64,000 bases of DNA, taken from Marsupella aquatica. Taxonomy: Eukaryota; Plantae; Marchantiophyta. Numbering within the stretch: position 1 is the first letter of the stretch; every line of letters starts with the position of its first letter. This document shows, one piece after another, positions 1,129 to 41,900 of this stretch. The stretch spans positions 13,918,330-13,982,329 of the forward strand of contig OZ316898.1 of assembly GCA_973895155.1 (NCBI GenBank), written 5' to 3'. The notes under the pieces were generated by a model that was not told where the DNA came from, ran no database searches, and saw only the letters and a list, made by a program, of their open reading frames with translations. The position numbers and the translations under genes are program-made.

Positions 1129-2435
1129 TTGAGTTGGATACATCTCATTGGCTTGTTGTGTAACCAATAGGGGTCTCAAACCTCAAACACAGCCTTGATA
1201 ACTTATGAGCATAACAAGTTATAGACTGTCTGCAAAATTCACAATCCACAACTTTTGCCATAATGGAATCATGATTGTACATGCCATGACAGAAAATCAT
1301 TTTAAAGGGCCATTCATTGTTAGTAAAGTCTAGTGGAGAAATCAAAAACAAACATATTTACAGAACTGGGAAAAAGGTTACAGCCATTTCTGTATGGCCA
1401 ACAGATATGGTTGGCCAGGAGATTACTATTCATGCATAATAGATGAGGTTGTGCTGAAGATGTACTTGATAAATACATCATGGTGCAAAATATATCTTGA
1501 GTAAAAGATTTTGATTGTTAATAAGATCTCATCGCATCAAAATTGTTGTTGTCAAGTGAAAGATGTCATGACGCAAAAGAGACTACAATCCCCCACCCAA
1601 ATATGACAAAGTGTGTGGGTTTTCTCTTCATTTTTATCATTTTTAATTTTTTTCCCTTTCAAACTTAAACTTTAAAGTGGTTTCCCCTCTCTATTTTTCA
1701 CTGTTTTTTGGTCCCCTCTTTCTCTCATTGATTATGCTATGCACTACCTTATTGATAACATGACTGTGTAATTAAACTTCTATCATTATTACATAGGACC
1801 CCGGCATAGGACTATCATGCAATACAATTATATGGTCATGTCACGTCTTGGTTAATGTTCTGGTTAAACGTATGGCTGACATAGATTTTGCACGTGGTAT
1901 AAAGGACTGCTCAAGTTTCAAAAACATCCAGCTCATAAGCTATGTCTAGCTCCAAAAACCGGGCCAAGAATTAAAACCTATAATATATATACAAGGTCCT
2001 GCCATGTTTTAGAGTGGTAGTTATTAAAAATCTAATGTTTGCAGTGCCAAAACTAATCAGTCTGTGAGAAAGCAACAAACAAAATCTAAGAATGTATGTA
2101 GAAACCGGATAGAGATAAGATGAAGGAATCCAGGAAATGGAGGATTGGGTACTAATCAGTCTATTCATTAAAACTGGAAAATTCTTTGATCTTTGGACAT
2201 TTAGGCACCAAAAAATATATATTTGGGCACAAGAATTGTACATTTGGGCAATGGGAGTTGTACATTTGGGCACCAGATGTTGTACATTTGGGGGATCAAG
2301 ATTGTACATAGGAGAAAATGAAATAATAATTTGGATTCTAAAGAAAAACATTTGGGTGATAATAATGTAAAATATGTTGGATAAGAAGTAGAACTTACTT
2401 ACATTGATTCAATTTGACTAATAGAATAGAAGTGT

Positions 2436-6000: not shown

Positions 6001-6102
6001 TCCGATTATCCTCAGCATACAATTCCACCTCCTCGGTCATCCAATTAGAACGCAAACTATAATCCTTGAAATTATAATTTGAAAAAACATCCTGTGTGGA
6101 CA
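3051..6102 (-). pseudogene. Sola-like (DUF7869-type) DDE transposase, central and 3' part, disrupted
   Basis: ORFs 5570-6127, 3609-5570, 3417-3599 and 3183-3416 form one gene broken by stops and frameshifts. Motifs: CTLC, IIHDKMDQ, LQMDNSGKDNKN, FLMVGHTHEDVDALFS. The frame continues across the GGTCG TSD into 30236-30872. Confidence 0.75.
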
Positions 6103-6107
6103 GGTCG

Positions 6108-7752
6108 TGTGACGGGGTCCCCGTCACTCGAAATCACAAATAATGGGTTGCAGAGGGGTGTGCCTTGTTAATAGCCACTGTAAATAAGCCGTTTTTAAAT
6201 TTTTTTAGTTAATTCTGCCATTATAGGTTGATGATGCCCCGGGTGACTTTATATTCTTTCTCTCATAACAGTTCTAAGATTTGCGCCGACCTAAGCGGGC
6301 AAATATTTTGGGACCTTAAAAAGTGCTAGGGCCAACCCCATAGGACTTACCATTTTGCTTGAGCTATCGTTGCGACCCCCTTGTAAAAAGAGGAATAAAA
6401 GGGAGCTTTGGGGGGGAATTAAAATTCCCCATTAAGGGGCACCGCGAGTACTAGTGAGGAGGCCGGGGATAAAGGAGGCTGCGGGGGGGGGAATTAAATG
6501 CCCTTATGGTGGCCTGGCATGGGGCGAGCCGAGCGCGCCCCGCGAGTGACCAGGTGGCGCCCGGAAAACCTAGACCCTTGCATAGGGAGGCACGCCGCGC
6601 GAGCCAGAGCTAGGGGGTACCGCGAGCCGGGAGGAGCCCACGAGTGGGCAAGCCCAGGTGGTGCTACCGGGGCGCGAGGCAAGTCGGGGCGCAGCGCAGC
6701 CGGGCCGCAGCCGGTGCCAGGAGGAAAGGGTCGCAGAAGGGGGAAAGCTCCCATGAGCCGGGCCCAAAGGAGGGGTGAGTCAGGTGGGGGGTATTAAACC
6801 CTTCCGCAAGGAGGGAGCAGGACCGGGCGTGCCCTGCATAGGGCCGCGTGCATCTGGGGTCCGCGAGTTGGAGGAGGAGGAGGGCTATCCAGTGGTGAAC
6901 TCAGAAGTGCAAGTGGAAGGGCACCTAGTTTCGGCCATTGTGGGGTTCCTTGCAATTTCACGGTTCACGGAGTAATGTTGGGGCGCCGTCGAAGGCACCA
7001 TCGGCCCCATTGTTAGTTTAGGGTTTAGGGTTTTAGAAGCATGTGTGTGCCGCATGCTTTTAGTTTAGGGGTTCCTTAGTGAAGGGTTTAGCGGCGCCGC
7101 TAGGGTAGCCGCCATCCTTGTGACCCCGTGAGGGGTGCTTTGGTGTGTTGTTTTGAGTATTTAGGGGGAAAGCCCCGTAGTAGTGAGGGGTAGTGAGGGG
7201 GGAACTCAGTCTAGTGGTTGCTTAGGGAAGTTAGCTCAGAGCCAGAAGGGGCAATCAAGCCAGAGTAGCGAGGTAGAGGTGTAGCACTTGCCCTAGTGAG
7301 GCAGTAGTTGGGCAGACGGCAAGAGGCCCGGTTGTCCTTGCAATGTGTTACGACATTTTGCCAAAAGATATGGATTTGGTTTGATTCCTCAAGTTTTGGT
7401 GTGGCGTTTTGGTGTGTGCTGGTTCACGATTGTGTTCTTTCCCCAAGAAGTGTCTAAAGAATACTTGCACAGATTGCTCGACCATGTGAGTAGGGGGGAT
7501 GGTGACAGCACTCCTCCAGCGACCAATAGGAGTGTGTGTGTGGCGTAGTCCATGGGACTTGATCAAAAGCAACAGGACTAGTCGGTAGACTTGATCAAAA
7601 ACTACATTTCTGGGAGCGGAAATAAACATACTCATCCTACATGCAATAGAATCCTAATAGCGTCCCTCCACGTTCCTATCATACGATAACAAACGATTTT
7701 AGTAGGAGTAAATACATATTTGTCGTGTAAATCGTTTGATAAGCAGGTGACA
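6108..7752 (+). repeat. 5' LTR (1645 bp, internally deleted)
   Basis: Starts TGTGACGGGG, ends GGTGACA; colinear with 25926-26671 plus 29379-30235. Confidence 0.93.
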
Positions 7753-13984: not shown

Positions 13985-16900
13985 AATGTGCGACCCTCTC
14001 AAAATATGTTACCGCGGAGATTGAGAGGAGCATATCGGGAAATGGGTATGCCGGAAGAAGGACAAGGCTCTGAGGCACATTCCTCATCAAGTGACAGTGG
14101 AAGCAACAACCCTGATCGCAATGTACCCAGAACATATGAACAGGTTATTGATGACCAAGATAGAGCCATGGATGATTTTATGGTTGATTGGTTTGGTGTC
14201 GACGTCCCTGGTGATGATGCTGAGGTGTCTGCTGATCAAGGAGGTTATGTGCCCCCCAATGATCCACGACCAAGACATACCCCCGAGGGACAGCGCCAAT
14301 GGGAGGAAGCAGAGGAACATGCCCGAACTCCTATCTATGAGGGTGCTCGTTTGAATCGTCTTTCTGCTATCTTGGGGTTGATGAATCTACAGGCCAAACA
14401 CAAGGCAAGCAATGCCTTGTTATCTGATATGTTTGCACTTTGCCATGACCTTATGTTACCTTCTGGCAATGTGTTTCCAGGAACTTGGAAGGAGGCCAAG
14501 CGTGTTCTCTCATCAATTGGCATGGAATATCATATCATTCATGCATGTGTGAATGATTGCATGTTATTTCATGGGGCCGATGAGAAGAAGACACAGTGTA
14601 CTGAATGTCATGAGCCACGGTATGACCCCAACATGATTACAAAGAAGGTGCCAAGAAAAGTTGTTCATTGGTTTCCCATCATTCCTTGGTTGTTGCACAT
14701 GTACAGGTGTTCTGATTTGGCAGAGTTGATGGTATGGCATAAGACTCATCGATCAGAGCCTGGTGTTATGCGGTTGCCAATTGACTCTCCTGCAGTCAAA
14801 CATATTGAGGAAACATGGCCAGACTTTGCACATGATCCTCGTCATGTGAGGTTGGGATTGGCATCTGATGGGGTTAGTCCTCATGCCCTTGGAGGCAAGG
14901 GAAGACCTACATCAGTTTGGCCTGTGGTTGTGATGAATTACAACCTTCCACCATGGCTATCCATGAAGAAGGGGTTCCTCTTGCTGTCTTTGATTATTCC
15001 AGGTCCAAAAAAGGTGAAGAACTTTGACACTTATTTGGCACTATTGATTGGAGAACTCCAAAAACTATGGGGTGGAGTGTGGGCATATGATGGCAGGAAA
15101 AATACAGGAGGCATTCCACGTGTATTTAAATTGAGAGGGGTAGTTTGTTGGACAATGCATGACTATCCTGGTAAGATGACTTTTTGACCATATGCCACCC
15201 TTCTTTGATATGCTCTTTAATATACTTGTTTGTCATGTGACAACCCTAACATTTAGTCTGGTTTTATTTTTGGTGTAACCAGGGTTTGGCTTTGTCTCTG
15301 GATTGCAAACTCAGGGGTACAAAGCTTGCTCCACCTATGGTCCACAATTGCAAGATATGACAATTTGGTCCCCATGGCTTAGGAAGATTGTTTACATTGG
15401 GCATACAAAGTTTCTTCCAATGGGGCATGAGATGAGGTCTGACCCACTTTTATTTTCCTCCTTTGACATGCCCCTTGGTGATATGCGGGAAATTCCGGAA
15501 CCAACAACTTTTGGGCATTGGAAGTCACTAGCTGATAGGGTGGCAGACCCTGATGATCCCCTCACCTTTGATGGTACTGGGTTGACGAGGTGGAGTATAC
15601 TAGCCAGTTTGCCCTATTGGTCAGAGTTGAAGATCCGCCATCTTTTAGACCCCATGCACATAGAGGGAAATGTGGGGAAGGCGTTGATAGCTCATTTTTA
15701 TGGGGAGAAGGACACTAACTTCAGGGAGGCATGTGAAGAGTTGGAAATGCATCCAGATGTATGGGTACAAGTTGATCCTGCCACAGGTTTGGAACATCGT
15801 CCTTCTGCTCGTTGGGTGCTTAGTGTTGGCCAAAGACGTGAATTCCGGAATCGTATAGGGGAGATGCGGTTTCCTACAGGCTATGGTGCCAATTTGAGGA
15901 AAGCTTTTGGGATGGAGGACAATCACAAATGGCCACGGTATCTCAAGACACATGACTATCACTGCTTATTGCAGCATATATTGCCAGTGGCAATTATAGG
16001 GTTGGGGATCAAAGAAGTGCAAGATGCCATTTGGTCATTGGGTCGTTTGTTGAGATGGATATGCTCAAAGGAGATATATGTGGAAGAGATTCCTGGAATG
16101 GAGGTATTGGCAGCTGAGGTGGTTTGCAAGTTGGAGAAGGCCCTCCCTCCTTCCTTCTTTAATTGTCAGGTTCATTTACTTGTGCATCTTGTGAGGGAGG
16201 TTGCCATTGCTGGTCCAGTTCATTGTCGATGGATGTACTAGCTTGAGCGTTACATGTCAGTCTTGAAGGCTTATGTACGTAACCGTGCACGAGTGGAGGG
16301 AAATATAGTACAGGATACTTGGCTGCAGAGAGCATGTTTTATTGTAGTAACATCTTGGCCACCATTGATCGGACTTTACCACGTACTTGGATGGAGGAGA
16401 GGCAAGAGGAGGAGGACCGTTTAACAGGAGCAACAAAAACACGCATGCTTACATCAACAGAGTGGACACAGTTGAATACATTCATGTTGAGTAATAGCAA
16501 TGTCATGGATGAATGGAGGGAGTTTTATGACAATGCCAAAAGAATGAGTCAAAGGGCAAGGATTTTTCCTAAGTTGCATGAGTTTATGAAGGAAAAGTTG
16601 GTTGAGTTGGATGGCATTTTGGCACAAGGAGGAGATGTCTCACAGTTTCCTACTATGACAAATGACATTCGGACCATTGTTCATGGCCCTTTGAGAGTGG
16701 TAACATCCAAGACGGCCATGTGGACCCAAGGGAGACACTTCAGGTTTCACTAGTTCCTAACCTTGTTTTCCATATTCATGTACTACTACTTAAGATATAG
16801 TAATCATTTTACTTAAGATAAGTGTGTTTTTCTCTTTTGGTATGAAAGGTTCCTCATAACATGATTAGTGTTTTTTGTGTAGTAGTAACAATATATGGGT

Positions 16901-23864: not shown

Positions 23865-25880
23865 ATCCTGAGAAATGCTTCTTCGGAATTGAGGAGGGGA
23901 TACTATTGGGCCACAAGGTGTCTGCTCGTGGCATCGAGGTGGATCGTGAGAAGGTGGCAGTGTGGGTGGCGGTCTCCTTTCCAAGAAATGTGAAGGAGGT
24001 GCAAGGCTTCTTGGGGTGTGTTGGCTACTACCGACGCTTCATCAGGGACTTTGCCAAGGTAGCCATGCCACTCACATCCATGTTGAAGAAGGGAAGTGAA
24101 TTAGAACCTACTCCTTCCTGAAAAGCTGCTTTGATGAATTAAAAAAACGTTTGCTAGAGGCTCCCGTACTCATTACGCCTAATTGGAATAAGGAGTTCCA
24201 TGTTTACGTAGACGTATCAGGATTTTGCATCGGTGCCATGTTGAGTCAGTTGGATGATGATGGAAGGGACCATCCCATCTACTTTGCTAGTAGGCAGTTG
24301 GCCCCGACAGAGAAGAACTACTCACCCACCGATAGGGAGGCTCTTGGTATCATTTACCCTTATAAGAAGTATCGTCATTATTTGTTGGGTTACAAGGTTG
24401 TGTTCCACACGGATCACAACAGCTTGAAATATATGGTCAACAAACCCGATCTGTCCGGGAGAATTGCACGTTGGGTCCGCTTATTACAGGAGTTCAACTA
24501 TGAGGTGAGGGTGAGATCCAGGAAGAGTCACAGCAATGCTGACTTCTTCTCCCGTATTGAGGGAGCATCTGACTCTCAAGAGATTGATGATCATTTTCCC
24601 AATGAAGAAGTCTTCAGGGTGACTACGGAGGCCACTACTTGGTATGGAGAAATTCTTGAATTTCTCCGTACAGCCAGGGTTCCATTACGGTTGGGTCCGG
24701 AATGTGCAACAGTGTTTTTACGTAAGACGGGGCCCTACTTGCTTGTGACGGGAGTACTTCACAAATACAAGATGGATGGACGCCTTTGCCGTTGTTTGGA
24801 GGAAGCCGAGATACATATGGTCATGGCGGCACTTCATGAGGAGGAAGCTGGGGGTCACTTTGCTCGAGAGACAACTGCCAGAAAGATACTAGATGCGGGA
24901 TATTGGTGGCCAACTCTTTTCTGGGACATGCACCGGTACATCCAGAGATGTGACCCCTGCCAACGCCAAGGGAAACCTGGCCCCTCCTCACGACATCCAT
25001 TGGTGCCAATCCTCCCCCTTGCCCCATTTGAGAAGTGGGGAGTGGACTTCATTGGTCCGTTCACTCCCATCACACGGAGGGGAAGGAAGCGGTATATCAT
25101 CCTAGCTATGGACTACGCTACCAAGTGGGTGGAGGCCCAAGCAACTGCAAAAGATGATGCCAACACCACGACACGTTTTTTGTATGAGCAGATCTTTACA
25201 CGGTTTGGCCCACCCTTGGAGTTGGTAAGTGACAGGGGTACTCATTTTCTCAATCATACAATCGAGCGTCTAACGGAGAACTACTTGGTCTCCCATAGGA
25301 AGACCACCCCGTACCATCCACGAGCCAACGGGCTCACTGAGAGAGCAAACGGGATCATGGGCAAGATTCTCAACAAGACGGTGTCGGCTCACAAGACAGA
25401 TTGGGATTTGAACTTGCTGGCTGCCACTTATGCCTACAACCTAGCTCACAAGACCACCACTGGCCACAGTCCCTACTTCCTTGTGTTTGGCCAACATTCT
25501 CTTGTGCCGGTGGAATTTGAGGTGCCCACCATTCGAATCTTGACACAGGAAAGAGAAGGGGAAGAAAGTAGTGTAGCTACGCGGATCCAACACTTGGAGC
25601 AACTTACGGAGGTACGAGAGGAGGCTTTGACGCGCACAGAGCAACAACAAGGCAAACAAAAGTTCCCGGCTCCGCCATGTGTCCATTGAGGAGGGAGATT
25701 TGGTGCTCCTCTACGACAGTTGTTTCATGCACTTTCCGGGGAAGCTACATACACGTTGGATGGGACCCTACCTGGTAGACACAGTCTACTCCAATGGGTC
25801 GGTGCAGCTCAAGACATTGGAGGGGCAACTACTCAACACACATCAATCAAGAACACCTAAAGAAGTACTACACGGAGGAG
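23865..25880 (+). pseudogene. pol: pol: RT end, RNase H and integrase with GPY/F motif
   Basis: FLGCVGYYRRFI, YVDVSGFCIGAML, TDHNSL; integrase H..GGH...C..C, WGVDFIGP, SDRGTHF, NGLTER; KLHTRWMGPY; frameshifts. Confidence 0.93.
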
Positions 25881-25925: not shown

Positions 25926-28900
25926 TGTGACGGGGTCCCCGTCACTCGAAATCACGAATAATGGGTTGCAGAGGGGTGTGCCTTGTTAATAGCCACTGTA
26001 AATAAGCCGTTTTTAATTTTTTTTAGTTAATTCCGCCATTATAGGTTGATGATGCCCCGGGTGACTTTATATTCTTTCTCTCATAACAGTTCTAAGATTT
26101 GCGGCGACCTAAGCAGGAAAATATTTTGGGACCTTAAAAAGTGCTAGGGCCAACCCCATAGGACTTACCGTTTTGCTTGAGCTATCGTTGCGACCCCCTT
26201 GTAAAAAGAGGAATAAAAGGGAGCTTTGGGGGGGATTAAAATTCCCCATTAAGGGGCACCATGAGTACTAGTGAGGAGGCCGGGGATAAAGGAGGCTGCA
26301 GGGGGGAATTAAATGCCCTTATGGTGGCCTGGCATGGGGCAAGTCGAGCGTGTCCCACGAGTGACCAGGTGGCACCCGGAAAACCTAGCCCCTTGCATAG
26401 GGAGGCGCGCCGTGTGAGCCAGAGCCAGGGGGTACCGCGAGCCGGGAGGAGCCCGCGAGTGGGCAAGCCTAGGTGGTGCTACCGAGGCGCAGCGCAGCCG
26501 GTGCCAGGAGGAAAGGGTCGCAGAAGGGGGAAAGCTCCCGTGAGCCGGGCCCAAAGGAGGGGTGAGTCACGTGGGGGGGTATTAAACCCTCCCGCAAGGA
26601 GGGAGCAGGACCGGGCGTCACCTGCATAGGGCCGTGTGCATCTGGGGTCCGCAAGTTGGAGGAGGAGGAGGTACACATTAAACCCTCCCGTGGGGGGGGG
26701 GCGAAGCAATAAGGGGAGAAGGAGGAGGGCGCGGCCGTAGGGGGCTGCCGGTACGTGGGGCGCCCTGCATAGGGCTGAGTGAAGTGAGGGGGGAAAATTA
26801 AATTCCCCCAGCCTTGGAGTACGGGGCGCATGCAGCAAGATGAGGAGGGTCGCGTGTCGGCATGCGCGAGCCCTTCATAGGGCTGCGAGCCGGGGCGCAT
26901 GGCGAAAGCTAGGGAGCCGGGAGAATAAAATACATGGGAGGGGTTCCCTTCCCTTTCCCTTGTATTAGCCATTTTCCTTTCTTTTCTCCTTCCCTACTTT
27001 CTACGCGACTCCTCCCTTTGCCGAAAGCACTTTGCTTACATTTCCAAAAGCTCTATCTCTTGCGAGCTCTCTCATGGTGGATTGGGAGAGCTTGGGGGCT
27101 CACATTTTTTTGGGCATTAGAGGCGACGGCATTGAGTGGCTTCTAAGGGAATTGAGGGTAATTGATTGATCGGGATACGGGGGCCGTTTCGGGCCAGGGA
27201 TTGACATTGCTACGGGTGACGGGATTTGGTGATTGAGGATTTGATTTTTGGATGCATGGATGCTGGATCAACCGGAGTTTAGTGCGGCATGCGTTTGGAG
27301 ATACAAGGCTGCTTACCGTGACTACGTTGAGACATTGATTGCAAGAGAGAGAGAAGAGAGAAAAGCCACGATGAGAACTGGGCTGGCGGCAAGTTCCACA
27401 CCGATGAGTAGGAAGGTTTTCCGTCGAATTTATCCCAAAACCTCCGCCACTTAGGTGATGGAGGATTGTAGGAATGTTTTTCAAGCCACCGGGCTCACGG
27501 AGTTCATGAAGGTGGAGATTACAATCCCTGCGGGGAAGAGTTGGAACATTGAGACCGGGATGGAGTTACGTACTGAAGGAATCTACTTTGAATGTCTCCA
27601 GCGGGTAGTGCCCCATGTGGAGTTAGCTAAGCTCCTGTTTTTGGAGAACCAACAATTCTCATTCACACCCCGGAACATAAGGGGAGAGCTCACATTGACA
27701 ATGGTGGCCGGTTGGGTGATTAATCCCACCTCCACTACTTCCATTCCTCTTTCCACCGCCAAGGATGCTGAGCACAAGGGATTTCTGGCCAAGGTTCATC
27801 AACGGGTCCTTGGTAACGTGCAATCCGGGGTGGTGAATGGAGAGCATTTTGTGGTAGCTATGGACATCAAGAACTATCCAGCCCATGTGTACGGATGGTG
27901 GTACTTTGGGTTGAAGAAGCTATTGGACGCCAATCCTGGGAGTGTGAAACCAGGTGGGGCTGTACACTTGATGGGGTCATTTTTGCTGGCCAGAGCAGAA
28001 GGGTGGATTGTTTCCCCGGGACAGGAAGACTCTGGATCATCCCTTACCACGGAAATCAGGAGTATTGCCACTACCATCGTGGGGAAACTAACGGAGGGAT
28101 CATTGTCGGTGGTTGGGGATGATAATAGAGAGGAAGAAAACCAGGATGAGGACTCCACATTGGAGTGGCTTGAATCACTTGTGGGAGATCCGAAGGAGCC
28201 CCTAGTCTACGACATTCCTGGTGTCTACCTGGCAGAGTTACGGGAATTCCGGGAGGGAGTCCATGAGGGACTCAAGCTAGTCCACGCATTGAGAGATTCT
28301 CTCAAGCAGGCCATCGCCAGAGTAGAGACTTTGGAGCAGAGTGCCTTGTCTATGAAGGAGGTGATCAAGGCCAAGGAGGAGGCCATTCATGAGAAGGTTA
28401 AACTTCTCCAAGCAACTCACATAGAGATCTCCAACTTGAAAGGAGCCTTGTCCACCAAGGCCAAGGAAGCGGAAGAGGTTGGAGTATTGAAACAGGCATT
28501 GGCCAAAGAGAAGCAGAATTCTGGAGAAGTGGTGGAGTTAAGAGCTCAGGTGGGAGCACTACGGGGTCAAATGGTGATCTTTGAGACAAGGGCTAAGAGG
28601 AGTGAGGCCTTGAGTCTGGGGAAACGGAAGAGCCCCTGCACACCTAGCTCCACACTTTCCCCAGATTTGATCTCCAGGGCCATTGAGATGGTGGTGAAGG
28701 AAGTCAGTGGGAAGTATGGACCCCTCTTGGATGCAGCCAAGAAGAGTCAAGAGAAGAGCAAGAGCTTATAGAAGAAGCTCAGGGAGGTACATAAATCATT
28801 ACGAGAGGCTCAGGTCAACATGGGGACCCCGGGGATGCCACCTCGATCTGTCACCCCTGGAAGTCCCATGGCCACCGGGCAGGTTTTACCGTTGGAGTTG

Positions 28901-30235
28901 CGATCCGGTGAAGAGGCGGCCTTATGGAAGGACACCATTGGTGAGGGGTACATCAAGGCGTGGCAAGCCTTGGCCAATTTGAGGAAGCAGGGGAGCACTA
29001 GCACAAGGAGTACCCTGGTGAAGAAGAAGAGGAGTGAAGTGGCACTCACATACTCTAGTGGAGAGTGATGAGGAGGCCCACTCACGGGGCTCAAGCCAGG
29101 GTACCGTGAGTGAAGAGGAGGAGGATTAGAGTGGTCGTACGGACGTGGTTGTAAGGCCCCTTGAATTTCCAACTTTTTTGTGAGGGGTCACTCACGGGCT
29201 TGTTGGAAAGAGCTCGCGGAGCTGAGTCCAACAAGAGGCAGCGCTCCTCAAACGGAGCTAGAATGAGCAAGTTAGGGTCCGACGAAGTTGGGATTACGGG
29301 ATACTGAAACAACCATCACTTGGTCGTCCGATGTCCGTTTCAAGAGCGGTTGAGTGATTCATGATCAGGAGGAGGAGGGCTATCCAAGGGTGAACTCAGA
29401 AGTTCAAGTGGAAGGGCACCTAGTTTCGGCCATTGTGGGGTTCCTTACAATTTCACGGTTCACGGAGTAACGTTGGGGCGCCGTCAAAGGCACCGTCGGC
29501 CCCATTGTTAGTTTAGGGTTTAGGGTTTTAGAAGCATGTGTGTGCCGCATGCTTTTAGTTTAGGGGTTCCTTAGTGAAGGGTTTAGCGGCGCCGCTAGGG
29601 TAGCCGCCATCCTTGTGACCCCGTGAGGGGTGCTTTGGTGTGTTGTTTTGAGTATTTAGGGGAAGAGCTCCGTAGTAGTGAGGGGGGAACTCAGTCTAGT
29701 GGTTGCTTAGGGAAGTTAGCTCAGAGCCAGAAGGGGGCATCAAGCCAGAGTAGTGAGGTAGAGGTGTAGCACTTGCCCTAGTGAGGCAGTAGTTGGGCAG
29801 ACGGCAAGAGGCCGGGTTGTCCTTGCAATGTGTTACGACGTCTTGCCAAAAGATATGGATTTGGTTTGATTCCTCAAGTTTTGGTGTGGCGTTATTTTTT
29901 CTGGTTCACGATTGTGTTCTTTCCCCAAGAAGTGTCTAAAGAATACTTGCACGGATTGGTCGACCATGTGAGTAGGGGGGTGGTGACAGCACTCCACTAG
30001 CGACCAGTAGGAGTGTGTGTGTGTGGCGTAGTCCATGGGACTTGATCAAAAGCAGCGGGACTAGTCGGTAGACTTGATCAAAAACTACATTTCTGGGAGC
30101 GGAAATAAACATACTCATCCTACATGCAATACAATCCTAATAGCGTCCCTCCATGTTCCTGTCATACGATAACAAACGATTTTAGTAGGAATAAATACAT
30201 ATTTGTCGTGTAAATCATTTGATAAGCAGGTGACA
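25926..30235 (+). repeat. 3' LTR (4310 bp, full length, contains an ORF)
   Basis: Same termini as the 5' LTR and followed by the TSD; has 2707 bp (26672-29378) absent from the 5' LTR. Confidence 0.92.
27248..29068 (+). pseudogene. LTR-encoded accessory protein (~600 codons; plant-transposon-protein-like N-terminus plus coiled coil)
   Basis: ORFs 27248-27454, 27455-28771 and 28820-29068 share one frame, split only by TAG at 27452-27454 and 28769-28771; heptad-rich C-terminal half. Confidence 0.7.
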
Positions 30236-30872
30236 GGTCGTTTAGCATATCCTGGGAAGAACTCCTCCGAGTAACATCCTTTAAATTCCAGAATACAAAA
30301 GTGTCCAATGCTTCCTGAACGGTATTGGCTCCATTGTGAGGAAAGGGTAACCTCTTCCTTCCTTGAAAAACTTCACATATTTTCACACTAATCCTAGAAG
30401 TGCCAAGTCTTTCATTGTGACAGGTCTCATCGGGATTTGTCTTGAACACAAATCCACGAGCCACAATCTGATTGCCGATCTAGAGCTGGACTTCATCGCC
30501 AGATATAATCGAGTCTTCAAAACTTCCCAACGAAGATTTGTCTGGTACAAAACCGGGAACCGTATCCTTTGTAGAACAAGAGGCATCCATTTGTGTTGTC
30601 GTTGGAGTTGACTATGACTTCAAATATGCAAAAGAGGCATCCCAAATAATGCAGGAGTCGACAGCATCAAACAGGGTCCTGATCAGCGGCAAAGGGTAAG
30701 GAATTTCCCGTGATCCCTCATAGTACTTCTCAATGAGAACTCGTATACGATTACGTCCCAAATCAACATTACGCACTGAGTCACCCGGGTCAACCTTGAG
30801 GACGGTCCCACAAGCAACTTCCACTCCGTCGATTACGAGGCAAACCTTGTCCCCTCGAAAGAAAATCCCCAT
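30236..30872 (-). pseudogene. Sola-like transposase, 5' part: two Tnp1/En-Spm-like (Transposase_23-like) repeats
   Basis: Pattern V.L.....VA.G.V...DP......LG...I.V.I.......PYP.....TL..A......W occurs twice; two in-frame TAGs; frame runs MLND-LSTQD across the TSD. Confidence 0.7.
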
Positions 30873-30908
30873 TTTGAAAACGTGGTCCAAACTGTTGGAT
30901 GTAGTTAC

Positions 30909-33900
30909 CTTGAGATGATCTCGAGGTAAAGTGACTACAAAAACTAACCAAAAAACCCAAGTGTAGAAGTTTATCCCACAAAATTGTGTGATAGAGAAAA
31001 TAAGAAACTCTTCTACCTCGAGACGATCTCGAGGTAGAAGAGGGACCAAAAACTCCAATATGTAAAAATTCAGAAGTATTTAGCTCAAGACGATCTCGAG
31101 GTAAAATATGAAATCTCACTGAATAGCGAATTCAGATTCTATACCTCCGACTCTCTACAAACTCAATTATAAGAAGGAAAACCGAATGCACCATTATAAA
31201 GAAGGCAAAAGTGAATAAGTTTGAGGATCAAACTTATGACTCGAGATGATCTCGAGCCAAAAAGGACATTGTATTTGACAAAGAAACTATTATGAATAAT
31301 AAGCCACCCAAAATAAGAACATATAAATGGCTCTAGATGATCTAGATGAATGATTTGGTGCAATTAAGAAAGTAGGCTCCCAGTTTACTTCCAGACACTA
31401 AGAAATAGCTTCTAAAATGCCATCAAATAGAGGGAAAAGGCTTCCAAATGGATTTTGACCGACACTAGTATAAGCTGAAAAGGTTTGGTTTTCTAAAAGA
31501 TAGGAGCTCAATTATTTTAGACCTCCTTCAGGGCTTAAAATGATAATTTCTCGAAATATCCTAAACACAAACGTAGAGTCCACAACCCTTGAAAAGAACA
31601 ACAGAAAGAGATCAGAGCAGAAATCTAGAGCCAAAGAGAGGGAGAGGGAGAGGGAGAGAGAGCAGAGAGAGGTAGAGGGAGAAACGAGCGAGCAATGAAA
31701 CGAAATGAGAAGAATGACCCGCTGGAGACCAAAGAGAAGCAATATATAAAACCCTGACAGACAAAAAGGCCAATAAGAAGGCTTGGTTGAACTTGTGTCA
31801 CAGCTAAACTTGCAGCAGGGCTGAAGTATGGATAACAATAATGACAACACGTGTGACCGTAATAATGATTGTACGCACCCAGCAGGTTGCGTGGCAGCCT
31901 GCCTGAGCCTGCACGAGCCCTGGCATGCTTGGCATGGCCAAGGCCGACCCCCGAGGGGCTTATAGTGGCTTCAGGGGTTTGGAATTCCCCATTTTCACAT
32001 TTGCCTCCTCGCCTCTTCGCCTCCTCGCGTCCCTTGCCTCCTTGCCTCTAGATTGTTTCGCGCTCTTGCCTCAGGATCCTTGTATTAGCCTCGAGATTGT
32101 AGAGGGTCGAGATTAGGTTTTTTCCTCAAGATTTTATAGGGTCAAGATTTTGTGTTTAGGCTCGAGCTTCGATAGGGTTGAAATTTTTAGTGTAGGCTCA
32201 AGATTTGTTTTTAAGTTCTCAGCCCGTAGTACGTTCCTCTCTTCAGCTCTTCACCAGCCATGTTGACTGTTGTAGATTTCTCCAAGGAGGACTTCGCTGA
32301 GTACAACCTTGCAACCGTTGGCGAAGAGCTTCAGACCCATCTAGACTCAGCGCATCAGATCCATCGCACCATTAAACGTAATTCATCATCTTTGTTCTGT
32401 TCAGGTTTAACTCGAGATCGTCTCAAGCTTCAATTGGTCCACTTGTTTCTGGATTCCTTGGATGCAGTGGAGGCTCAAGATCATCTCGAGCCTATTGATG
32501 TTTTCTGCAATACTTTGCTTCAAAAGTTGTGATCTATCAATTGATTTTGCATTTGATGTAAGTGGCATGAGGCTCGAGATCGTCTCGAGCCAATATGCAA
32601 TTCCTGCATGTGACCTAGTGAGATTTCTTCAAGTTGGAAACCCTTATCCTTCAAAAGTGAAACATCATATCCAAAATATCTAAAATTTCCTTCCTCCAGG
32701 GACTTATGTACCCTCCAACTCGTTCTGATCATTGACATCCGAACGGGTTTGTGGGTATCAGAAGTCAATGGAGAAAGTGGATTTTAATCATTGATTAAAT
32801 ATGATGTTCATTGTTGAATAAGATATTCGGATCACTCGTTTGACATGTTAGGCTCGAGATCGTCTCGAGCCAAATATATCCCTCACCATCTTCCATTATG
32901 GTCATTCGTATCCCTTGGCCAATTTCTTCCAGTTGGAAGGACTCCATGTCGTCTACTTCAATTACTAATATCCTTTTCATTGTGATCCAAGCTTGCCTTT
33001 TGGACCACTTTCTTAGTCCTCCAACTCGTTTGTGAAGATGACAAACCACTGAGTTAGAGGGTTTTGAATGTGGTCGAATAGGTGACATTGGATCATTCTT
33101 GAAAATGTTGTTCGTTAAATTTGACTGGTTCATGATATGCAATGGAATAAAACCTCAACTGATATATATGAGGATCGAGATCATCTCGAGCCCTTGTCTT
33201 TTACTTTTAAACAGATGGTGGCTCGAGATCATCTCGAGCCTATTGTGTTTCCTAACTATTGTGTTATCTTTTTAGATTTTTTGGGTTTGAAATCTCTTTT
33301 TAAATTCCACGAATGAAATGGCATTGGAACATGTAAGACTATTAAACTTAAAAGGAAGACCGAGATCATCTCGAGCCACCTATTTGTTTCTTGGTTTTGT
33401 AGTACATGTTTATGACAATTGCTACATTTTGGCTGTACCAGGTGCGAAATTGGGATCGCCTAATTTGGTAGTCAAAGATGAACATGCAATTGAGGTTTCC
33501 TGCCCTGGACATGGTTTATTTGGATTCTGTTGGGCCATTGAGCTTGCTGAAACTAAAGACATGGAAGGAACTATTATTTGTGTGAAGACGAGGTCTCCAT
33601 CAATTGATCCTCTAGTGTGCAGCCTTCTAGGGCCTGTTGTTTCTATTGTGACGAGTAACGGTAAGGACATGGTTTTGACGGTGGAGAACCACGAGACAAG
33701 GAAGTGGGCTCTAATTAGACTTCATGCCAAAAACTACTCTTGCGATCTTAACATTGAACGTGCAGCCAGGAAACAACTGAGCGTGATATCAATGGGGTTC
33801 TTCCCCGAGGGTTTTACTACAAGTAATTTGCTAGAAGATACTCCTATATCTGGAGCGGACATAATTTTTGGATTCTTTTATTGTCAAAAGTATGGGTTTG

Positions 33901-36900
33901 ATCGTGATGATGCATTCACGACTCCTTTCACGTGGAAGGTTTTGAGACTAATGTCGGAATCCAAATTGGAGGAGTTTGAATCCATATCCCCTGATTTTGT
34001 GTTTGGAGTCGGGGAATTTGACGAGGATGCTTGTAAAAAGTGGGTGTTGTCTCATCGGAGACAAACAGGTAAATTGAAATCTGTAGCTGCGGGAGACAAG
34101 ACGTCCGGTTTGGACAAAAAAGAAGCACAGGTGTCTCAAAAGAGGAAGAGGGTTGAGAAACCCGAAAGCAAAGCGAAGAAGGCTCCACCTCAAAAAAAGT
34201 TCGCGCCGCCCAAGGTAGATCTCATTCCGGCATCTTCCTCGAGTGTGAATGCACATACCGATGATGATGGCACTCCAGGAGATGCTCCGGGAGAAAAGAG
34301 CGTTAAGGAAGGAGCCAAAGTTCTTAAGGAGATTGAGGAGTATTACACATTTGGCATGAATGAAACTTTTGACATTCCTGTCACTAGTATAGATTCGCCG
34401 TCTGCAGTTTTGGTATATAGGATGTTCAATAAAGACCATGCCATGGAGGTCGCAAAATCCATGGTTAGAAACCCTGGAATGGTGCCAGCTGTGGCGGATT
34501 TAATTCCGTATTCAAGAGAGAGTTTGCAGTTGCTCCATTATGAGAATACTGCTGAGGATCGAAAGGAGTTCGAGCCCGGAGTTCGAGTGGGGTGTTAAGA
34601 ATAAGAAGGTGCAGTTTCTTGCAATAAGTGGACAACACTCGGCAAAGGCAGCTGTTTGGATCATAGGTTGGGCTAAGAGCGATGCAAAGTTGAAGGAGGT
34701 CGCGAAGAGTCTGCAATATCGAAAGTCATGAATTCTTTCAGACAGAACTCCAAGAACAATACTTGCTCAACACTCACAAAGGGAAAATGCTGTTAATAAG
34801 ACCATGGAGTATGAGTCCTATTTTCTTGATACTATGGTCCATGCCCGTCGATAGTTTGACGAGTGTGGCCATCCGGAGAGACCCGTGATTGGGTCCAATA
34901 GACTAACGGATCATCAAAAGTTCCAGGTAAATTTGAACTCAAATCCACTTCTAGCTCGAGATTGTCTCGAGCCTCGAGGTCAAGTTTCTGTATTTGATTT
35001 ATCTTCATGTATTCTCCCATAAATTTTACCATAGTTCCTTAATTCTACCTCGAGATCGACTCGAGCCTCAGATTTTCTTTGTACTGTTTGGATCAGGATT
35101 TTATGGCCCTTGCCAAAATAACGACTGGAAAATCCGATCTGAGGAATATGTTTTGGTTGCTGTTTTCGGATGAGAACCTCTTCCGAACTTGGAGACAAAT
35201 GTGCATCGATTGGGTCAAGGGACTTCTTCCGGATGGTCTAGGGGAGTTAGGTTCAAAAATAAATGGGAAATCCCGAACAACAAAAATGATTACGCCGGCA
35301 TTGTTTAGATGCTTTGAAGGAGACCCAAGTAGTGACGACATTCTGAAAGTTTTTACTGCCGTTCAACAACAGAAGGTTTTATTGAAAAAAGACCCAGCCA
35401 ACAAATCTGATGTTCAATCAATGAGTGATATGGCTCATACTTTCAAAGTCATGACCAAGCTGAGGGCAAAAATTGTGGAGTACTTCGTTTTGAAGTATCC
35501 GGATCGGTTTGCCAATTCACTCACTTGGTTTGAGCTAACTCAATTTTTGCCTGCATTTATGGATCGTGGTGAGTTGTCGAAACTTAGACAACTTGCTAGA
35601 GAGGTTTGGATTTCCAACCTCCTAAAGAAATAGGCCAAAAGACCCATTTCTGCAAAGTCTCATTGTTAGGCTTGAGCAGATATATTGCAAGGTATTTGGT
35701 GGGTTGCCTTCAATGGAGGATACTCCTTATCGCACATTTTTTAGCGATAATTTGATGAGGACAATGAAGCCTGAGATTGCCCACTCTCCATTGTCGATTT
35801 TGGTCGTCTTCGACAACAGCAGTGGACAGATGCCAAAATTTTTGTCTTGCTGGAGTATTATTTGCAGATGGCAAACTCGATGGAGCTCTTAGTAATCTTT
35901 TTTGTCTGTCAAGGCCCATTGATAGGCCAGATTCAGGGTGCCTTTGAAAAGATTCGTCGTGAGAAGAAAGTCCACACGAAGCTGGAGTATGGGAGCTACT
36001 ACCGTGATCAGCTGCCCAAGGAGGAGGAAGATTTTCTCATTGGAGCCCGAGACTCAAACATGTTTGGGGGAATTTGTTGTGAAGAGGAACCAGACTGGTC
36101 CCAAATTTTCTTTGATGACTTTTATGCGTTCTGGAACTACAATGAGAAGTAGGACAAAGACTTCACAGTCTTGCCTTTGAAGGCCCCTACTGGGAACAAC
36201 AAAGACCAATCAAAGGGGAAAGATAAACTCGATGAATCCACTGTTGATGTCGAAGTTTTGGAGAAGATGGCCCCATCTTATGAGATGTTCGGTCGGCGTG
36301 GTGGCTTTGTAAATCCGAGAGCAAAGCCTTTGCGAATGACAAAGCGTCTTGTTGATTATTTCTCGTGCCCAGGTCATACAGTGTTGGATTTCTTCTCTGG
36401 AGGACAGACATTGAAAGCTTGTGTCATTCTTGGTCAGGATTGTTTTGTGTATTCGGACACAGCTCAAGAGATGGAATTCACAGAAGCCTTTGCTCAGCTC
36501 CCTCATGACAACAAGCAGGTTTTATATGTGCCACCCAAGGAGCCGTTACCATCTGAGGAAATTACTGCCGGTCCCCTCGTTGTAATAGAAGAGGCGGCCT
36601 TAGACATAGCTCCGGTGGAAGCCAGTGTTTATGAGGAAGTATTTGCAGAGAATTTAGAGCATCGCAAAACGGAGGGCCCGAAAATCACAAGCTACATGGA
36701 AGAGGAGGGTGAAATACTGCCTGAATTTGGAAATGATGCTCGAGATGATCTCGACGTTCCAGGTGTTCCTTCATCAGGTGACCTTGGGGATGCACAACGT
36801 GAACAACAGTCTTCAACCTTGGATGTTGGCTGGGAATCCACCTTGCAGGATGCAATTAGCCAACCAATTCCAAGCCCTCCTCAATTGGATGAGATTTTCT

Positions 36901-38903
36901 CTACTAAGAAAGCTAGTGGCTGCCATACTCCCCCTCAGGACGAGGCAGGTGCATCGTCCTCTCCCTTGGACCAAATGTTTTGCGCTTCAGAGAATAAGCT
37001 TGTTTTCACAGATTCTTCTACTGGAAGCCCCGTAATTCTCCCTTTTGTTAGGAAATTGGGGACTGAAATTGGTAGAACTGGTTACAAATCACTCAAAGCA
37101 AGTGCTACTCATTATGTTTGGACTGATGGACCGTCAAAAGGTCAACAAATCAGTATAGAGTAGTCTGAAAAGATTATTCGATCTAGAAAGTATAGGAAGG
37201 ATAAGTTCAAATTAGTGCCAGTTTGGTCTGAGCCAGCTCTTGTTGAGACCCTTCCCGGAGGGATAAATTTGGACATCCAAAACCAACTTACTAGGAGATA
37301 ACCTTCTAGATGAATTTGGGTCTTTCAGCACGTGAGGTTGAAACCCAAGTTAGTTTGAATAGTCCTGAAATTCAGCCGTCTAAATTATTATGTCTACCTT
37401 CATAGAAATAGGCGGGCCCTTACCAGTTGTGGAGTGCGTCGACAATAATCTCCAAAGATGTCCTGAGATTTCTTCAACTACTGACCTTCAACCAACAATA
37501 GGTATGACGTTGACTGTTGTTCATTCACTTGTGATGCTCGAGATCGTCTCGAGCATTCCTCTGTTTTATCTCCCACAATTCTAACATTGGTGTTCCTTCT
37601 TTGCAGGACCCTTGCCTCCACTTCACGGTCCGATCAGACGGAAGCTATTGATTCTTGACCTCAACAAAATGTGTTGGGATTCTGTCAAAATGCCAAGTTC
37701 CGGACCGCGCCGTAGTGCAACAAGTGTCAAGGGTGTCCACTGGGGGAGACGTGGAGGGTTTAACTTTATGAATGTTGAGCGACCCCATCTTCACGAGTTC
37801 TTAATTGCAGTTTTTTCGTTATTTGATGTTGCCATTTGGACTTGTGCAAGGAAACCCAGGACGGATGAAATGATTCATTTGATCTTCAGTCAAGAAGAGC
37901 GAGAGCAATTCAAGTTTATTCTCACACAAGAAGATACATTCGATACTGGAATCCAAAGGCCTGACATTACTGATGGGAAGGCAAATATTCATTTGAAGGA
38001 TTTGAGGGTGGTTTGGAAACGTTATGGTGGATTATACGACGAAACTAATACACTCCTTCTTGATGACACTCCAATGAAGACATTTGCAAATCCAGAGAAT
38101 TGTGGGTTGTTTCCTTCCTCATTTTCGCATCACTCCACGGATGATACAGTCTTTCCAGAAATACTATGGCCTCTGCTCAGGAAATTGTATCATGCCTTCA
38201 ATCTTCAGCATCCAAAGTGGTCTATGATAAATGTTTTAGCGGACAAAGATCAACAGGCTGCCATTTATGAGTTGTTGATGGAGCGGTGGGGTAGTATGGT
38301 ATGGGTTCATTCGGTTATCCATACAGTCTTGGATGTCACAGTGGACAAAATTCCTTGGGATGTCAAGAATGAAGTGCAACAATTACCACCAATGGAGGAA
38401 TTGACAGAGGAGGCGATCAATGACCTTGCAAAGACGTTAATTGGATATCAGTACACAAGACCCTACAGAGACAATCATCGGGGATTTGTTTCGGAAGTCT
38501 TGAGGTGTAGGGACCTCACCACGAAGTTCTAGAATAGGAAGCCTCTTGATTTCTACAATCGCGATATGAAATATGACCCGTTAGGGTCTAGATTTACTTG
38601 CTCAAATGAATTCTGCGGGGTGGAGGAGCATGAGATTTGGGTCTAGATTATCTCGACCCTACACTGAACAGTTACAATGTGAGTTGTAGATATACATATT
38701 TTTACTCGAAAAAAAGTGAAGCTATGCGTACTATCCATTTGAGTCTAGATGTTGTTGATCCTCTTTTACTTGTAGATATGTTCTTAGAAAAAGGTTATTT
38801 GGGTCTCGACCCTATACAAAGGGAATAGCTAGAGATATAGATTCAACAACGGGTCAAAATTATGTGGATGTGGACCCTACATTTGGGTCGAGATAATCTC
38901 AAC
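30909..38903. repeat. Dispersed 17-bp palindrome CTCGAGAnnnTCTCGAG (~17 copies here plus one at 5741)
   Basis: Exact or near copies start at 30909, 31017, 31084, 31240, 31331, 32411, 32474, 32573, 32853, 33174, 33222, 33359, 34955, 35049, 36739, 37537, 38641 and 38887. Confidence 0.9.
32260..38532 (+). pseudogene. Multi-exon cargo gene with ParB-like, N6/N4 DNA methyltransferase-like and FCP1/NIF HAD phosphatase-like domains
   Basis: ParB-like ~34370-34800 (FDIPV..I...YR...HA..VAKSM; FLAISGQHSAKAA). MTase-like ~36300-36460 (NPRAKP...LVDYFSCPGHTVLDFFSGG..LKAC..LGQ). HAD-like 37607-38200 (KLLILDLN, RPHLHEFL, VAIWTC, LKDL..VW, NTLLLDDTP.K). Introns 34927-35096 and 37502-37606 (the latter phase-compatible); many stops and frameshifts; 5' exons uncertain. 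Confidence 0.7.
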
Positions 38904-41900
38904 ATAGATTTTTACATAGTAATTGATATACATTCAACAACCGGTCAAAACCATCTAGAGCCTGCATTGGGGCAGACGTGGTCTCGACCTTGTAAAAATA
39001 GGTTTTTTACTTTTATAATACATTACCGGTTTACCTTCCGTGTTTGTGTAACTTGGTTATCACGGGTCATTTGAATTTATTATATTGTCTTATTCTATTT
39101 TTTCATTGTTTATATTGTATATAATAAGAACACTTTATTGTCTTTTAATTAATAAGTATTAATAATTGATAACTGAATTATTTAATTAATAATTTGGGAA
39201 TTAGAATTGTAATTTTAGACCTCAAAAAGTGTATAGCCACTAAAATATATGCTTTTGGGGAACAAGTACTTATAGAACTTTTGGGGGTAAAATAAAACAT
39301 TTGAAGGTCAACTTCTGGACTAGAGAAATTCCAGTTTTAATGAATAGTGTGATACTACTTGTACTCCTTTAAAATTCAACCCTCCCCACGATCCACCTCC
39401 CAGATAGTGCTTTTTGCAAAAAACAATGGAACAAAATACAAAACATGGTCTACTTCTCAATTCCCAACAGAGTTTTATGGGTGTGACATTTCTCAGAGAC
39501 TACAAGCCAAAATTAAATTCATTCATTAGACTATCAGGTCAGCAATTCCACCATTTTTTTCTTTTGAAAGCCCAAATCGAGTAACTTATTAGCCTTTGCC
39601 CAAGGGAATGCCCTTGCCCTTTGCCCAAAATGCCTGTCCCATACCACTGTCCATCTTTCCCTCTTCTTGGGCACACACCTCCTTCCCCGAGAATTGAAAA
39701 TTACAGACCTTGGTGCATCTAGGCATCTTTTGCTCTTTCCTTGGGCACAAATGTAGTGCCTTGAAAACTTGAGAACAATATATATTTCACAATTAACTAG
39801 ATCTTTTACACAATGACATTTCTTCGCAATGACAACAACAACATATTTTTTACAATGACATTTATCAACTATATCTTTCTCGTAATGATATCTTTTACAT
39901 AACAACATCTAACCCATGAACAGAATAAATTAGAGTGTTTCCCCCACCCAGGCATTTATCCAGGGTAGATGGATAAGGGCTAGCGGCCGGTTTGCCCTCT
40001 TCAAAAAATAAAACATAAAAAAAATATCAAAGTAGAACATCAAGAGTGTTTTAGTTTGGACCACCACCGGGAGCCACCACCATCACAACGATACAAGTAC
40101 AAAATAGCAACATTTTGAACAGCGAAAGAATGCCTTCCATTAACGATTTACCTAAAGAAAAGGACTGTAAACGAAAAGAAAAGACGGGAAGAACGAAATA
40201 GTACAAAGAGTGAGCAAACGATCAATTTATTAGCAGTATGACTCAGCTTCGAATCTAAAATTGGTCAGCCCTGCAAATCCTCAAGAATCTACTCGCCGGT
40301 GAAATGACCCCACAAACCAAGTATGTGGTGTGAGGTAGTCAAAGCATGTCATCAATTATCCATTCCTAGTAAGTCGAACCTTCATTATCTCCTACTGAGA
40401 GTCAGCCACAGCTTCAAGAGCAGCATTATATATGTCAGGGCATGTACACTCAACGTGCAAGAATGGGAGAAGGAAGCTCGTTGGGCCGAACTGAGGAAAG
40501 TTTCGCAAGGTATTCAAAAGGGTGGCCGCAGTCAGCGAAGAACACTAAAAGAATGATTATAAATGAAGTGATCTCACTCCGTAAGTGATAGATCGAGGGC
40601 GGTTACAGATACTCTGAAAGGGCTCAATTCCTGCCATGGGAGCATTGTTGTTCATACACACTCTGAAAGGGCACTTTCCTGCCATGGGAGCTGCATTGTT
40701 GCTCATACACACTCTGAATAGCGTGCACGATAACGTGATTGCGGATCAATTGGTTGTCTGAATAATTGCAATGGAGCGTGAAATTGTTGCATGAATGCCA
40801 TGTCGGATGTTGTCTGAGTAATTGCAATCTACCATGAATTGTTATGTGAATGCCATATCTAGATGTCTGATTGAGTGTGACCCCGTTGTCGTTGTCGCAC
40901 ATTTAGTCACTTGTCAAATTAATGCCACCTCGCGATTCCCCAGCAATTGACAAGTTACACGAAAAGTGTACTGTCGGTAGGTTGTTTGCCTTCAGCTTCC
41001 TTACAGCACTTCTAACGAACTGTCTTTCATTAAGGTGATGTGAAAGGATTCGAAGACTGAAATAGATTTCTTGTTAACCGAGCTGACAGGGGGAATCCGT
41101 CTACAGTGTTTCTATTTTGACATTGTACTGTGACAGACCTTTCCACTGGTCCCCTCTAAATAATCATAACTTCTCTTTCCGGTACGTGATAGAATAGTTC
41201 AAGCCTATCGAAGACTGTCAAGACGCAACCCGGCTGAAATAGTTCAAGCATATCGACGACTGAGACAGTAGTTTTTGTTCCAGTAGACACCAGGATGAAA
41301 ACCCATTATTTAGCTACAAGACGTTGTGCATATCGCCGAGGGAATCCTTCTAGTCCTAGTTTTGCATGCACAAGAGATGATGTGCAATTGTGCAAGTGAT
41401 TGGTCGATCGGGAGAGGAACAGCTTCGAACCCTGCAGTTTAAATCTTGGCCAGGCATCCGTTTTGGCCAAAGGACATAGCGGATCGAAGCTCCCTCTGCT
41501 AAATTTTACACGGTACCTATGATTTTAAGGATTATGTATGACAATGATCGATAGATCTGTGAGGTGAATTTCTTGGTGCGTTGTCCGCTCTGTCCTCCGC
41601 ACTAAACTATTGAGAGGCTGAAATTGACCTTCCATATGTTTATTCCATGTATTATTTCTGTCAAGGATTCTAGCAAGTATTTTCGCGGTCAGTTACCTTA
41701 TACTCTCGTACTTGCAACTTTTTCTCCTTTTTCTCTTCCTGGCATCTTGACTCCTATTACACACGTCCTTTCAGTTCTGTACTAAACACTAACTGGCATT
41801 AGCAATTCATTATTCTCTCAAACAAAAATTTCAGCTTGGCAATAGTGGTACAGCGTTGTGATGGTCCCGGGTCACCCCCGGGGTCACCCCTACGTTGGCA

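Follow-up and report, generated by a model that had tools for sequence, protein, structure and literature searches.

Does a transposon of land plants encode a protein that recognizes palindromes in the transposon's own DNA? The question is raised by a 64-kb stretch of the liverwort Marsupella aquatica (contig OZ316898.1, positions 13,918,330 to 13,982,329; hereafter the window), plant DNA dense with transposons. An original prediction had placed at 30236–38903 a DNA transposon with a cargo protein made of ParB-like, methyltransferase-like and phosphatase-like parts, and with a palindrome of its own. A liverwort DNA transposon of the cut-and-paste type, 13.07 kb in length, lies here as a dead copy. 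Its palindromes would be bound by a dimeric protein that the element itself encodes, most likely the ParB-like accessory protein, in line with proposals for its algal counterparts, and the family would thereby recognize its own copies. Taken whole, this explanation (a dead liverwort transposon, an accessory module and palindromes bound by an element-encoded protein) is in our judgment evenly balanced. The supposed novelty of the system did not hold, as opposite-strand ParB–methylase genes in Sola1 elements and inverted-repeat arrays next to ParB-like accessory genes were published for algae in 2025, together with the idea of self-binding (PMC12477816; 10.1101/2025.02.11.637652). Rather than a new system, the element represents a land-plant variant of this algal design.

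The predicted interval lies within the transposon, but the true span is wider, 2155–39353, of which 13,066 bp are the element's own DNA. Its borders are given by 25-bp terminal inverted repeats, the left one (2155–2179, plus strand) starting with ATCA and matching the reverse complement of the right one (39329–39353, minus strand) at 23 of 25 positions, 19 of them in a perfect core (blastn E = 1.7e-4). Immediately beyond them stands an identical 4-nt target-site duplication, ACTA, at 2151–2154 and 39354–39357. The terminal-repeat sequence is also kept at the transposase-proximal end of a copy in Calypogeia fissa (L006, 12042–12073). A 4-bp target-site duplication together with terminal inverted repeats is the hallmark of the Sola superfamily (Bao, Jurka and Kapitonov 2009), and the window element has both. 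The Sola label fits on the strength of the 4-bp duplication and of the analogy with Sola1-1_Ec32 of Ectocarpus.

Gene mapping bore out the predicted pairing of a transposase with a large multi-exon accessory gene, the transposase and accessory module being transcribed divergently, on opposite strands, from about 31.9 kb. The window copy is interrupted by a foreign long terminal repeat (LTR) retrotransposon of ~24 kb (6108–30235, plus strand), recognized by its LTR pair (6108–7752 and 25926–30235, 92–95% identity) and by the 5-bp duplication GGTCG (6103–6107 and 30236–30240). It sits inside a transposase exon, and its reverse transcriptase, RNase H and integrase domains lie at 24151–25689. Nothing works in the window copy: this insertion splits the transposase, and frameshifts and stops interrupt the accessory genes, in agreement with the decay that had been predicted.

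We next consider the palindromes themselves. At two mismatches or fewer, CTCGAGATNATCTCGAG is matched 16 times in the 64-kb window, where 0.04 matches would be expected; 15 of the matches lie at 30909–37553 and one at 5741. The palindrome is better described by 8–9-bp arms, (G)GCTCGAGA, around a 3-nt spacer (9+3+9), and in full reads GGCTCGAGA-NNN-TCTCGAGCC. Allowing at most three mismatches over the 16 arm positions raises the count to 18. Every one of these copies lies within the 13.07 kb that belong to the element, and the other 50.9 kb of the window are free of them, so the claim that the palindrome is confined to the element was upheld. By our own arithmetic, the chance of all 18 sites falling in element DNA is 0.204^18, or about 4e-13. 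The sites occupy introns, untranslated regions (UTRs), the stretch between both genes and two coding linkers. Four to five of them lie in introns or the 5′ UTR of the transposase gene (30908–31348), where the outer base pair gives the variant CCTCGAGA; a scan for palindromes placed seven at the 5′ end of the cargo gene, in its intron or UTR (32410–33376), and one in the acidic linker of its methylase exon (36738). Across 30908–38658 the spacer is asymmetric and mirrored about the divergent promoter.

The same arrangement recurs in relatives. The full layout, with NIF-, methylase- and ParB-like parts on one strand and the transposase diverging on the other, was found in Calypogeia fissa (L006) and in subfamilies A (L005) and B (L008, CM100799.1) of Riccia sorocarpa. 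The predicted linkage of cargo gene, transposase and palindrome is therefore seen in two other liverwort genomes. Four short contigs (L001–L004) hold collinear parts of the layout, cargo genes without the transposase, and two of these, L002 and L004, carry palindromes of their own. Each palindrome is private to its lineage: GGTCGAGA-NNN-TCTCGACC in L002 (6 copies), GCTCGCGA-AAT-TCGCGAGC in L004 (2 copies), AGCCTCGATA-CSG-TATCGAGGCT in Calypogeia (14 perfect copies), TTCGGGAC-GC-GTCCCGAA in Riccia A (30 copies) and, in Riccia B, half-sites ending TAAGGAC. Arms measure 8–10 bp and spacers 2–4 bp across the lineages, except for the ~17-bp arms of Riccia B. Both arms shift jointly from one lineage to another, GCTCGAGA/TCTCGAGC becoming GCTCGCGA/TCGCGAGC or CCTCGATA/TATCGAGG. 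Dyad symmetry maintained in this way, while the sequence differs, is in keeping with binding by a dimeric protein that the element encodes. In Riccia B the half-sites number ~90 within L008 1–7900, far above the numbers of the other lineages and with the longer arms.

Site positions are also shared. Palindromes recur in the cargo 5′ intron or UTR, where L002, L004 and L006 each carry their own, in the intron between the ParB-like and methylase-like parts, in the spacer between the methylase-like and NIF-like parts, and in the 5′ region of the transposase. An in-frame palindrome in the transposase linker is kept in two genera (window 5740–5758 and Calypogeia L006 8697–8713), and the peptide encoded beneath it is GRDHLE in the window and GRYGID in Calypogeia. 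As the linker peptide varies with the palindrome of each lineage, what is conserved here seems to be the DNA and not the peptide.

The candidate binder was predicted from a ParB-like motif, and the string in question, FLAISGQHSAKAA, is indeed present, in an open reading frame (ORF) at 34540–34731. In the ESM Atlas, the corresponding segment of a relative (P0001 residues 318–500, equivalent to window 34299–34927) lies nearest to fungal DUF3723 (PF12520) clusters (0.95–0.96, with 181–188 shared features), and ParB_N follows at 0.90. This language-model similarity is the sole support for ParB homology, and "ParB-like" describes a motif resemblance.

Several observations weigh against the explanation given at the outset. 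The segment had no match in Pfam, NCBIfam or PHROGs at E values up to 10, and the family profile had none among PDB sequences, so that ParB homology has no support from hidden Markov models (HMMs); similarity to the ParB_N, DndB or DUF262 families was likewise not seen in these searches. The segment reads SGQHS, where the DndB-type signature is DGQHR. An AlphaFold2 model of the ParB-like exon, built on a 7-row alignment, had a mean predicted local distance difference test score (pLDDT) of 35.8 and was not used for fold search. L001 and L003 hold cargo genes and no palindromes in the stretches sampled. At a further Riccia locus, L009, half-sites of the L008 type stand just upstream of the transposase and no cargo gene was found within 10 kb; sites can therefore persist without a ParB-like gene in cis. 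From sequence, both the ParB-like protein and the N-terminus of the transposase are candidate binders. Lastly, the altered methylase motif described below leaves some catalysis conceivable. Whether the palindrome accompanies the ParB-like gene and not the transposase was examined at L009, but the k-mer count that revealed the half-sites there did not discriminate between the two, and the idea was set aside.

The strongest alternative assigns the palindromes to the transposase. TnpA of En/Spm binds subterminal 12-bp motifs, and the Tnp1-like repeats of the liverwort transposase might similarly bind the palindromes for end-pairing or for regulation of the element's own promoters, with the accessory module doing something unrelated. 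Three such repeats are present, and the Calypogeia relative P0292 matches PF03017 (Tnp1/En/Spm, E = 2.2e-8). The half-sites at L009, next to a transposase and with no cargo gene detected, suit this explanation, as do degenerate palindromes at both subterminal regions: a half-palindrome inside the left 35-bp tandem unit (2436–2576), and two sites (38640 and 38886) in the right subterminal region (38580–39000). The majority of sites, however, lie in cargo introns, kilobases from the ends and not in subterminal clusters, and the ends bear other repeats, namely a 22-bp tandem unit at 2193–2309 beside the 35-bp unit on the left (Tandem Repeats Finder) and ATTTGGG repeats on the right. DNA binding by Tnp1-like repeats is itself an assumption from En/Spm biology. 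We consider binding by the transposase possible, with a small but appreciable chance of being correct. The ATTTGGG-containing repeats of the two subterminal regions (2193–2309, the 22-bp tandem array, and 38580–38900) have the same orientation and are not inverted.

A bolder version of binding by the accessory protein is rather doubtful. Each lineage would re-tune its half-sites and binder jointly, as a fast-evolving private address, and a catalysis-free scaffold, sitting at the sites or spreading outward from them, would protect or mobilize its own family, the ParB-like segment being homologous to DUF3723. Pfam PF12520 did not match the cargo proteins. DUF3723 is a recurrent accessory gene of the giant Starship elements, and our literature search found no paper linking it to ParB. 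If this version were true, ParB-like accessory proteins would be a trait that giant transposons have in common in plants, algae and fungi.

What the accessory module might do at the palindromes depends on its enzyme-like domains. The predicted methylase-like block was confirmed. Pfam N6_N4_Mtase (PF01555) matches the window ORF with E = 2.2e-5 (25 bits, just below the gathering score of 26.7) and the relative P0186 with 29.2 bits, above that score, and a family profile matches M.RsrI among PDB sequences (E = 9e-7) over NPxAKP...VLDFFSGGQ. The original prediction had staked its case on a ParB/Srx or methyltransferase fold appearing in profile searches; the methyltransferase appeared and ParB did not. 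The motifs of the S-adenosylmethionine (SAM) pocket, VLDFFSGGQ and NPxAKP, correspond to HPTQKP...VLDFFAGSG in M.RsrI and are kept in all members, among proteins of a mere 27–61% identity. This conservation points to continuing constraint on the methylase-like domain. Motif IV, (D/N/S)PP(Y/F/W), is absent in 7 of 7 members, which instead have VDF, VDL or LDF followed by two variable residues (IVDFTR, FVDFTR, FVDLLR, ILDFSR, IVDFAR, IVDFSK and, in the window, IVDFGR). A low-confidence model of the methylase exon (mean pLDDT 51.7) would place these residues on the strand preceding the DPPY site. With this model Foldseek returned nothing at E ≤ 0.001, and the best VIA-align Z was 6.8. The weak fold matches were METTL14, CcrM, M.RsrI and M.MboIIA, and the recurrence of methylases among them is consistent with the methylase identity without proving it. 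The one confidently modeled part, a helical domain at residues 10–130 of the exon, had no informative fold match. By tblastn the methylase core had no match in plasmids, and in phages only weak ones, to adenine methylases of lambdoid phages.

The predicted HAD-like block is an NIF/FCP1-like domain (PF03031, E = 7.5e-17, 61.9 bits, with the gathering score at 21.8), and its Riccia counterpart matches the same family (E = 4.7e-13). An NIF-like ORF lies at the matching position in L001, L004, L005 and L006, and its closest relatives are ORFs of 345–404 amino acids. The catalytic DxDx(T/V) motif is altered in the window to LDLNK, with DxN in place of DxDxT. Relatives in which the motif pattern was matched, ordinary plant proteins included, nearly all have DxN, mostly DxNG, and two have DLE or DVE; the second aspartate is thus replaced across the whole NIF subfamily. 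The nearest relative covering the full length (45% identity; L007 141–2006, ENA ERZ24794422 NODE_31508), from another lineage, lies 63 nt downstream of a Ulp1-protease (Peptidase_C48) ORF and not of a methylase-like gene, so the NIF-like gene seems able to move as a module between transposon cargoes.

These motifs bear on a further alternative, in which the ParB-like part loads at the palindromes and the fused methylase deposits N6-methyladenine or N4-methylcytosine there, as a mark of the family. The sites contain TCGA and GATC, the SAM pocket is kept at the divergence given above, and the passages on the algal relatives describe them as predicted N4C or N6A methylases (PMC12477816). Replacement of motif IV in all seven members makes enzymatic marking doubtful; the PF01555 alignment covers only the C-terminal half of the profile, leaving the N-terminal half unaligned in both the window and P0186, and the best matches of the low-confidence model include METTL14, an inactive partner. 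We judge active self-marking improbable. Of the earlier proposal that the protein marks its family, the private palindromes stand and the enzymatic part is weakened. Binding by the accessory protein would more likely make the module a site-bound scaffold than a site methylator, a preference that rests on the loss of DPPY, the DxN of the NIF-like domain and the retention of the SAM-pocket motifs. Possible roles of such a scaffold are protection of the element against silencing and the recruitment or trapping of factors, the C-terminal domain (CTD) of RNA polymerase II being an example.

The palindromes might instead act in RNA, as intron and UTR hairpins that influence splicing, give rise to small RNAs or serve as decoys for them. 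Most copies are in introns and UTRs, and, read in the sense direction of the local gene, the spacer is TCR, or its C-to-T derivative TTR, in 16 of 17 scorable copies of the window (binomial p ~3e-4). The bias in Calypogeia is weaker and of opposite sign, the spacers of L006 (1171–8713) being mostly CGR on the sense strand (11/14). Sites also occur between genes and past the ORFs, in Riccia up to 2 kb beyond the transposase, and an Rfam search gave no family match. For these reasons an RNA role appears unlikely, and we give it little credence. Mismatched copies, moreover, show CpG decay and not sense-strand G–U pairs, and stems of 9–10 bp are short for Dicer substrates. Spacer polarity was not counted in favor of an RNA role, and a simple possible explanation of it is the history of local duplications. 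That the palindromes are functionless, a short selfish or slippage-prone repeat multiplying locally, is very unlikely: adjacent copies are often alike in spacer and orientation, as local duplication predicts, and copy number ranges from 0 to ~90 among relatives, but six lineages keep perfect dyad symmetry in different sequences at matching gene positions, the in-frame linker site included, and the 51 kb of surrounding DNA hold no palindrome.

Very few transposons are known to recognize their own sequence and act on it, and the tested case is VANDAL with its VANC protein. In Arabidopsis, VANC of VANDAL21 acts on short non-coding motifs of its own family, and motif and protein co-diverge. VANC is unrelated in sequence to the liverwort proteins, its motifs are not palindromes, it belongs to a Mutator-like element and its hypomethylation activity has been shown, whereas the liverwort element is known from sequence alone. 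Dimers of bacterial and phage ParB occupy ~16-bp palindromes (parS). In ParB-fused beta-class methylases the ParB part is N-terminal to the methylase, as in the liverwort cargo, for which M.RsrI is the closest solved methylase. The liverwort cargo differs from the bacterial and phage ParB-methylases by its SGQHS motif, in which the signature residues of ParB are lost, by the negative HMM searches, by the loss of DPPY and by being a eukaryotic, intron-bearing gene in a transposon.

In 2025, the ParB–methylase accessory genes of giant algal transposons were put forward as a second type of self-recognition, and the liverwort loci extend this design to land plants. The passages on Sola1-1_Ec32 of Ectocarpus describe a giant cut-and-paste element with an opposite-strand gene for ParB and an N4C/N6A methylase, propose that its protein binds and modifies its own element, and cite prior reports in green and red algae (Genome Biol 2025;26:320, PMC12477816). 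As given there, Sola1-1_Ec32 has a brown-alga host, a length of 21.5 kb and a 1104-aa protein, while the window element has a land-plant host and a length of 13 kb; the passages mention no phosphatase-like partner or palindrome array, and the liverwort element has both. It differs further in the loss of motif IV, in the NIF-like ORF downstream and in private palindromes spread over introns, UTRs and linkers. In Plavaka (EnSpm) elements of red algae, PAG3 is ParB-like and PAG2 is an N6-methylase, each with another enzyme domain; the Bostrychia preprint reports tandem arrays of inverted repeats beside the PAG3 gene, hypothesizes self-binding, cites the VANDAL system for comparison and detects the ParB homology of PAG3 weakly (HHpred E = 0.29) (Petroll et al. 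2025; 10.1101/2025.02.11.637652). Plavaka belongs to another transposon superfamily, its ParB is fused to a 2-oxoglutarate oxygenase and its methylase to SET, and its repeats are tandem arrays beside the gene, whereas the liverwort palindromes are dispersed through introns and UTRs. The traits of the algal class, an opposite-strand accessory gene conserved across copies and species as well as element-specific inverted repeats, are found in the window, in Calypogeia and in both Riccia subfamilies. Our literature search found no paper on such elements in liverworts.

The liverwort loci add three things to the algal design. The palindromes are private to each lineage, and their arms change jointly while their places in the genes stay the same, even for a site in a coding linker. 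Canonical catalytic motifs are missing from both the methylase-like and the phosphatase-like part, which points to binding over marking, and an NIF-like ORF is a constant third partner. The window copy has no function of its own, and its value is that of one more dated, nested copy.

The transposase lies on the minus strand. A Sola-like transposase had been predicted next to 31.9 kb, and its 5′ part is present there, but 30.2–31.9 kb hold only this non-catalytic part, the catalytic core being at 3612–5570, beyond the retrotransposon. The 5′ part (30241–30899) contains Tnp1-like repeats 1 and 2, and 5573–6102 contain the third repeat and the linker with its in-frame palindrome; the reading frame of this second segment joins 30241–30479 without a break once the LTR element is excised. 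The three repeats, ~80 amino acids each, are alike by eye, and those of the window had no match in Pfam. The 3′ part (3054–5570) comprises the open DUF7869 core (PF25273, E = 1.3e-44) and, C-terminal to it, a stretch that in-frame stops interrupt at 3609, 3417 and 3183. Among 168 transposase homologues the majority come from Riccia sorocarpa and Calypogeia fissa, and the window transposase is 65% identical to that of the Calypogeia locus. A literature search found no paper on DUF7869.

The accessory module lies on the plus strand, and its cargo gene was searched exon by exon, each exon separately. An intergenic stretch with presumed promoters (31349–32259, by position) is followed by a candidate first coding exon (32260–32379), an ORF that begins with ATG and is followed by GT. 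The next exon (33318–34927) encodes an N-terminal domain without a known family and the ParB-like segment with ISGQHS, and is 43% identical to P0001 (E = 2e-87). An intron with GT and AG ends (34928–35072) carries two palindromes (34954 and 35048), and the ORFs of all relatives are interrupted at its position. The methylase exon (35073–37335) encodes the helical domain, the beta-class DNA-methylase-like domain, the acidic linker and a conserved tail ending DEFGS. A spacer or intron with one palindrome (37336–37606; palindrome at 37536) ends in an acceptor-like gcag, and the NIF/FCP1-like, CTD-phosphatase-like ORF (37607–38532) contains the DLNK motif and a family-specific C-terminal extension.

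Decay was scored against the intact relatives P0001, L001, L003 and L004. The helper genes of the window have at least four frameshifts (~34571–34588, ~35628, ~35780 and ~37290) and at least four in-frame stops (34729, 34852, 36150 and 37161), and two of the cargo-gene stops are C-to-T changes, the pattern expected of methylated dead DNA.

The junction between the methylase-like and NIF-like parts may be spliced in more than one way. The methylase-exon ORF ends 3–6 codons past DEFGS in 6 of 6 copies. L001 (4236–4241), L003 (2892–2897) and L004 (4298–4303) have a phase-1 donor-like G/GTGA 6 codons ahead of DEFGS, 14–17 codons ahead of the stop, and the window has GGA in its place (~37290–37300). 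A phase-1 acceptor-like gcag/G precedes every NIF-like ORF inspected (window 37600–37607), two of which have an ATG just upstream, and the donor and acceptor are compatible in phase. Alternative splicing could thus yield both a short protein and a methylase–NIF fusion.

The nested retrotransposon has itself received insertions. Its 3′ LTR holds an extra insert of 2.7 kb (26672–29366), and a CACTA element with Transposase_21 and DUF4218 domains lies inside it at 13988–16241.

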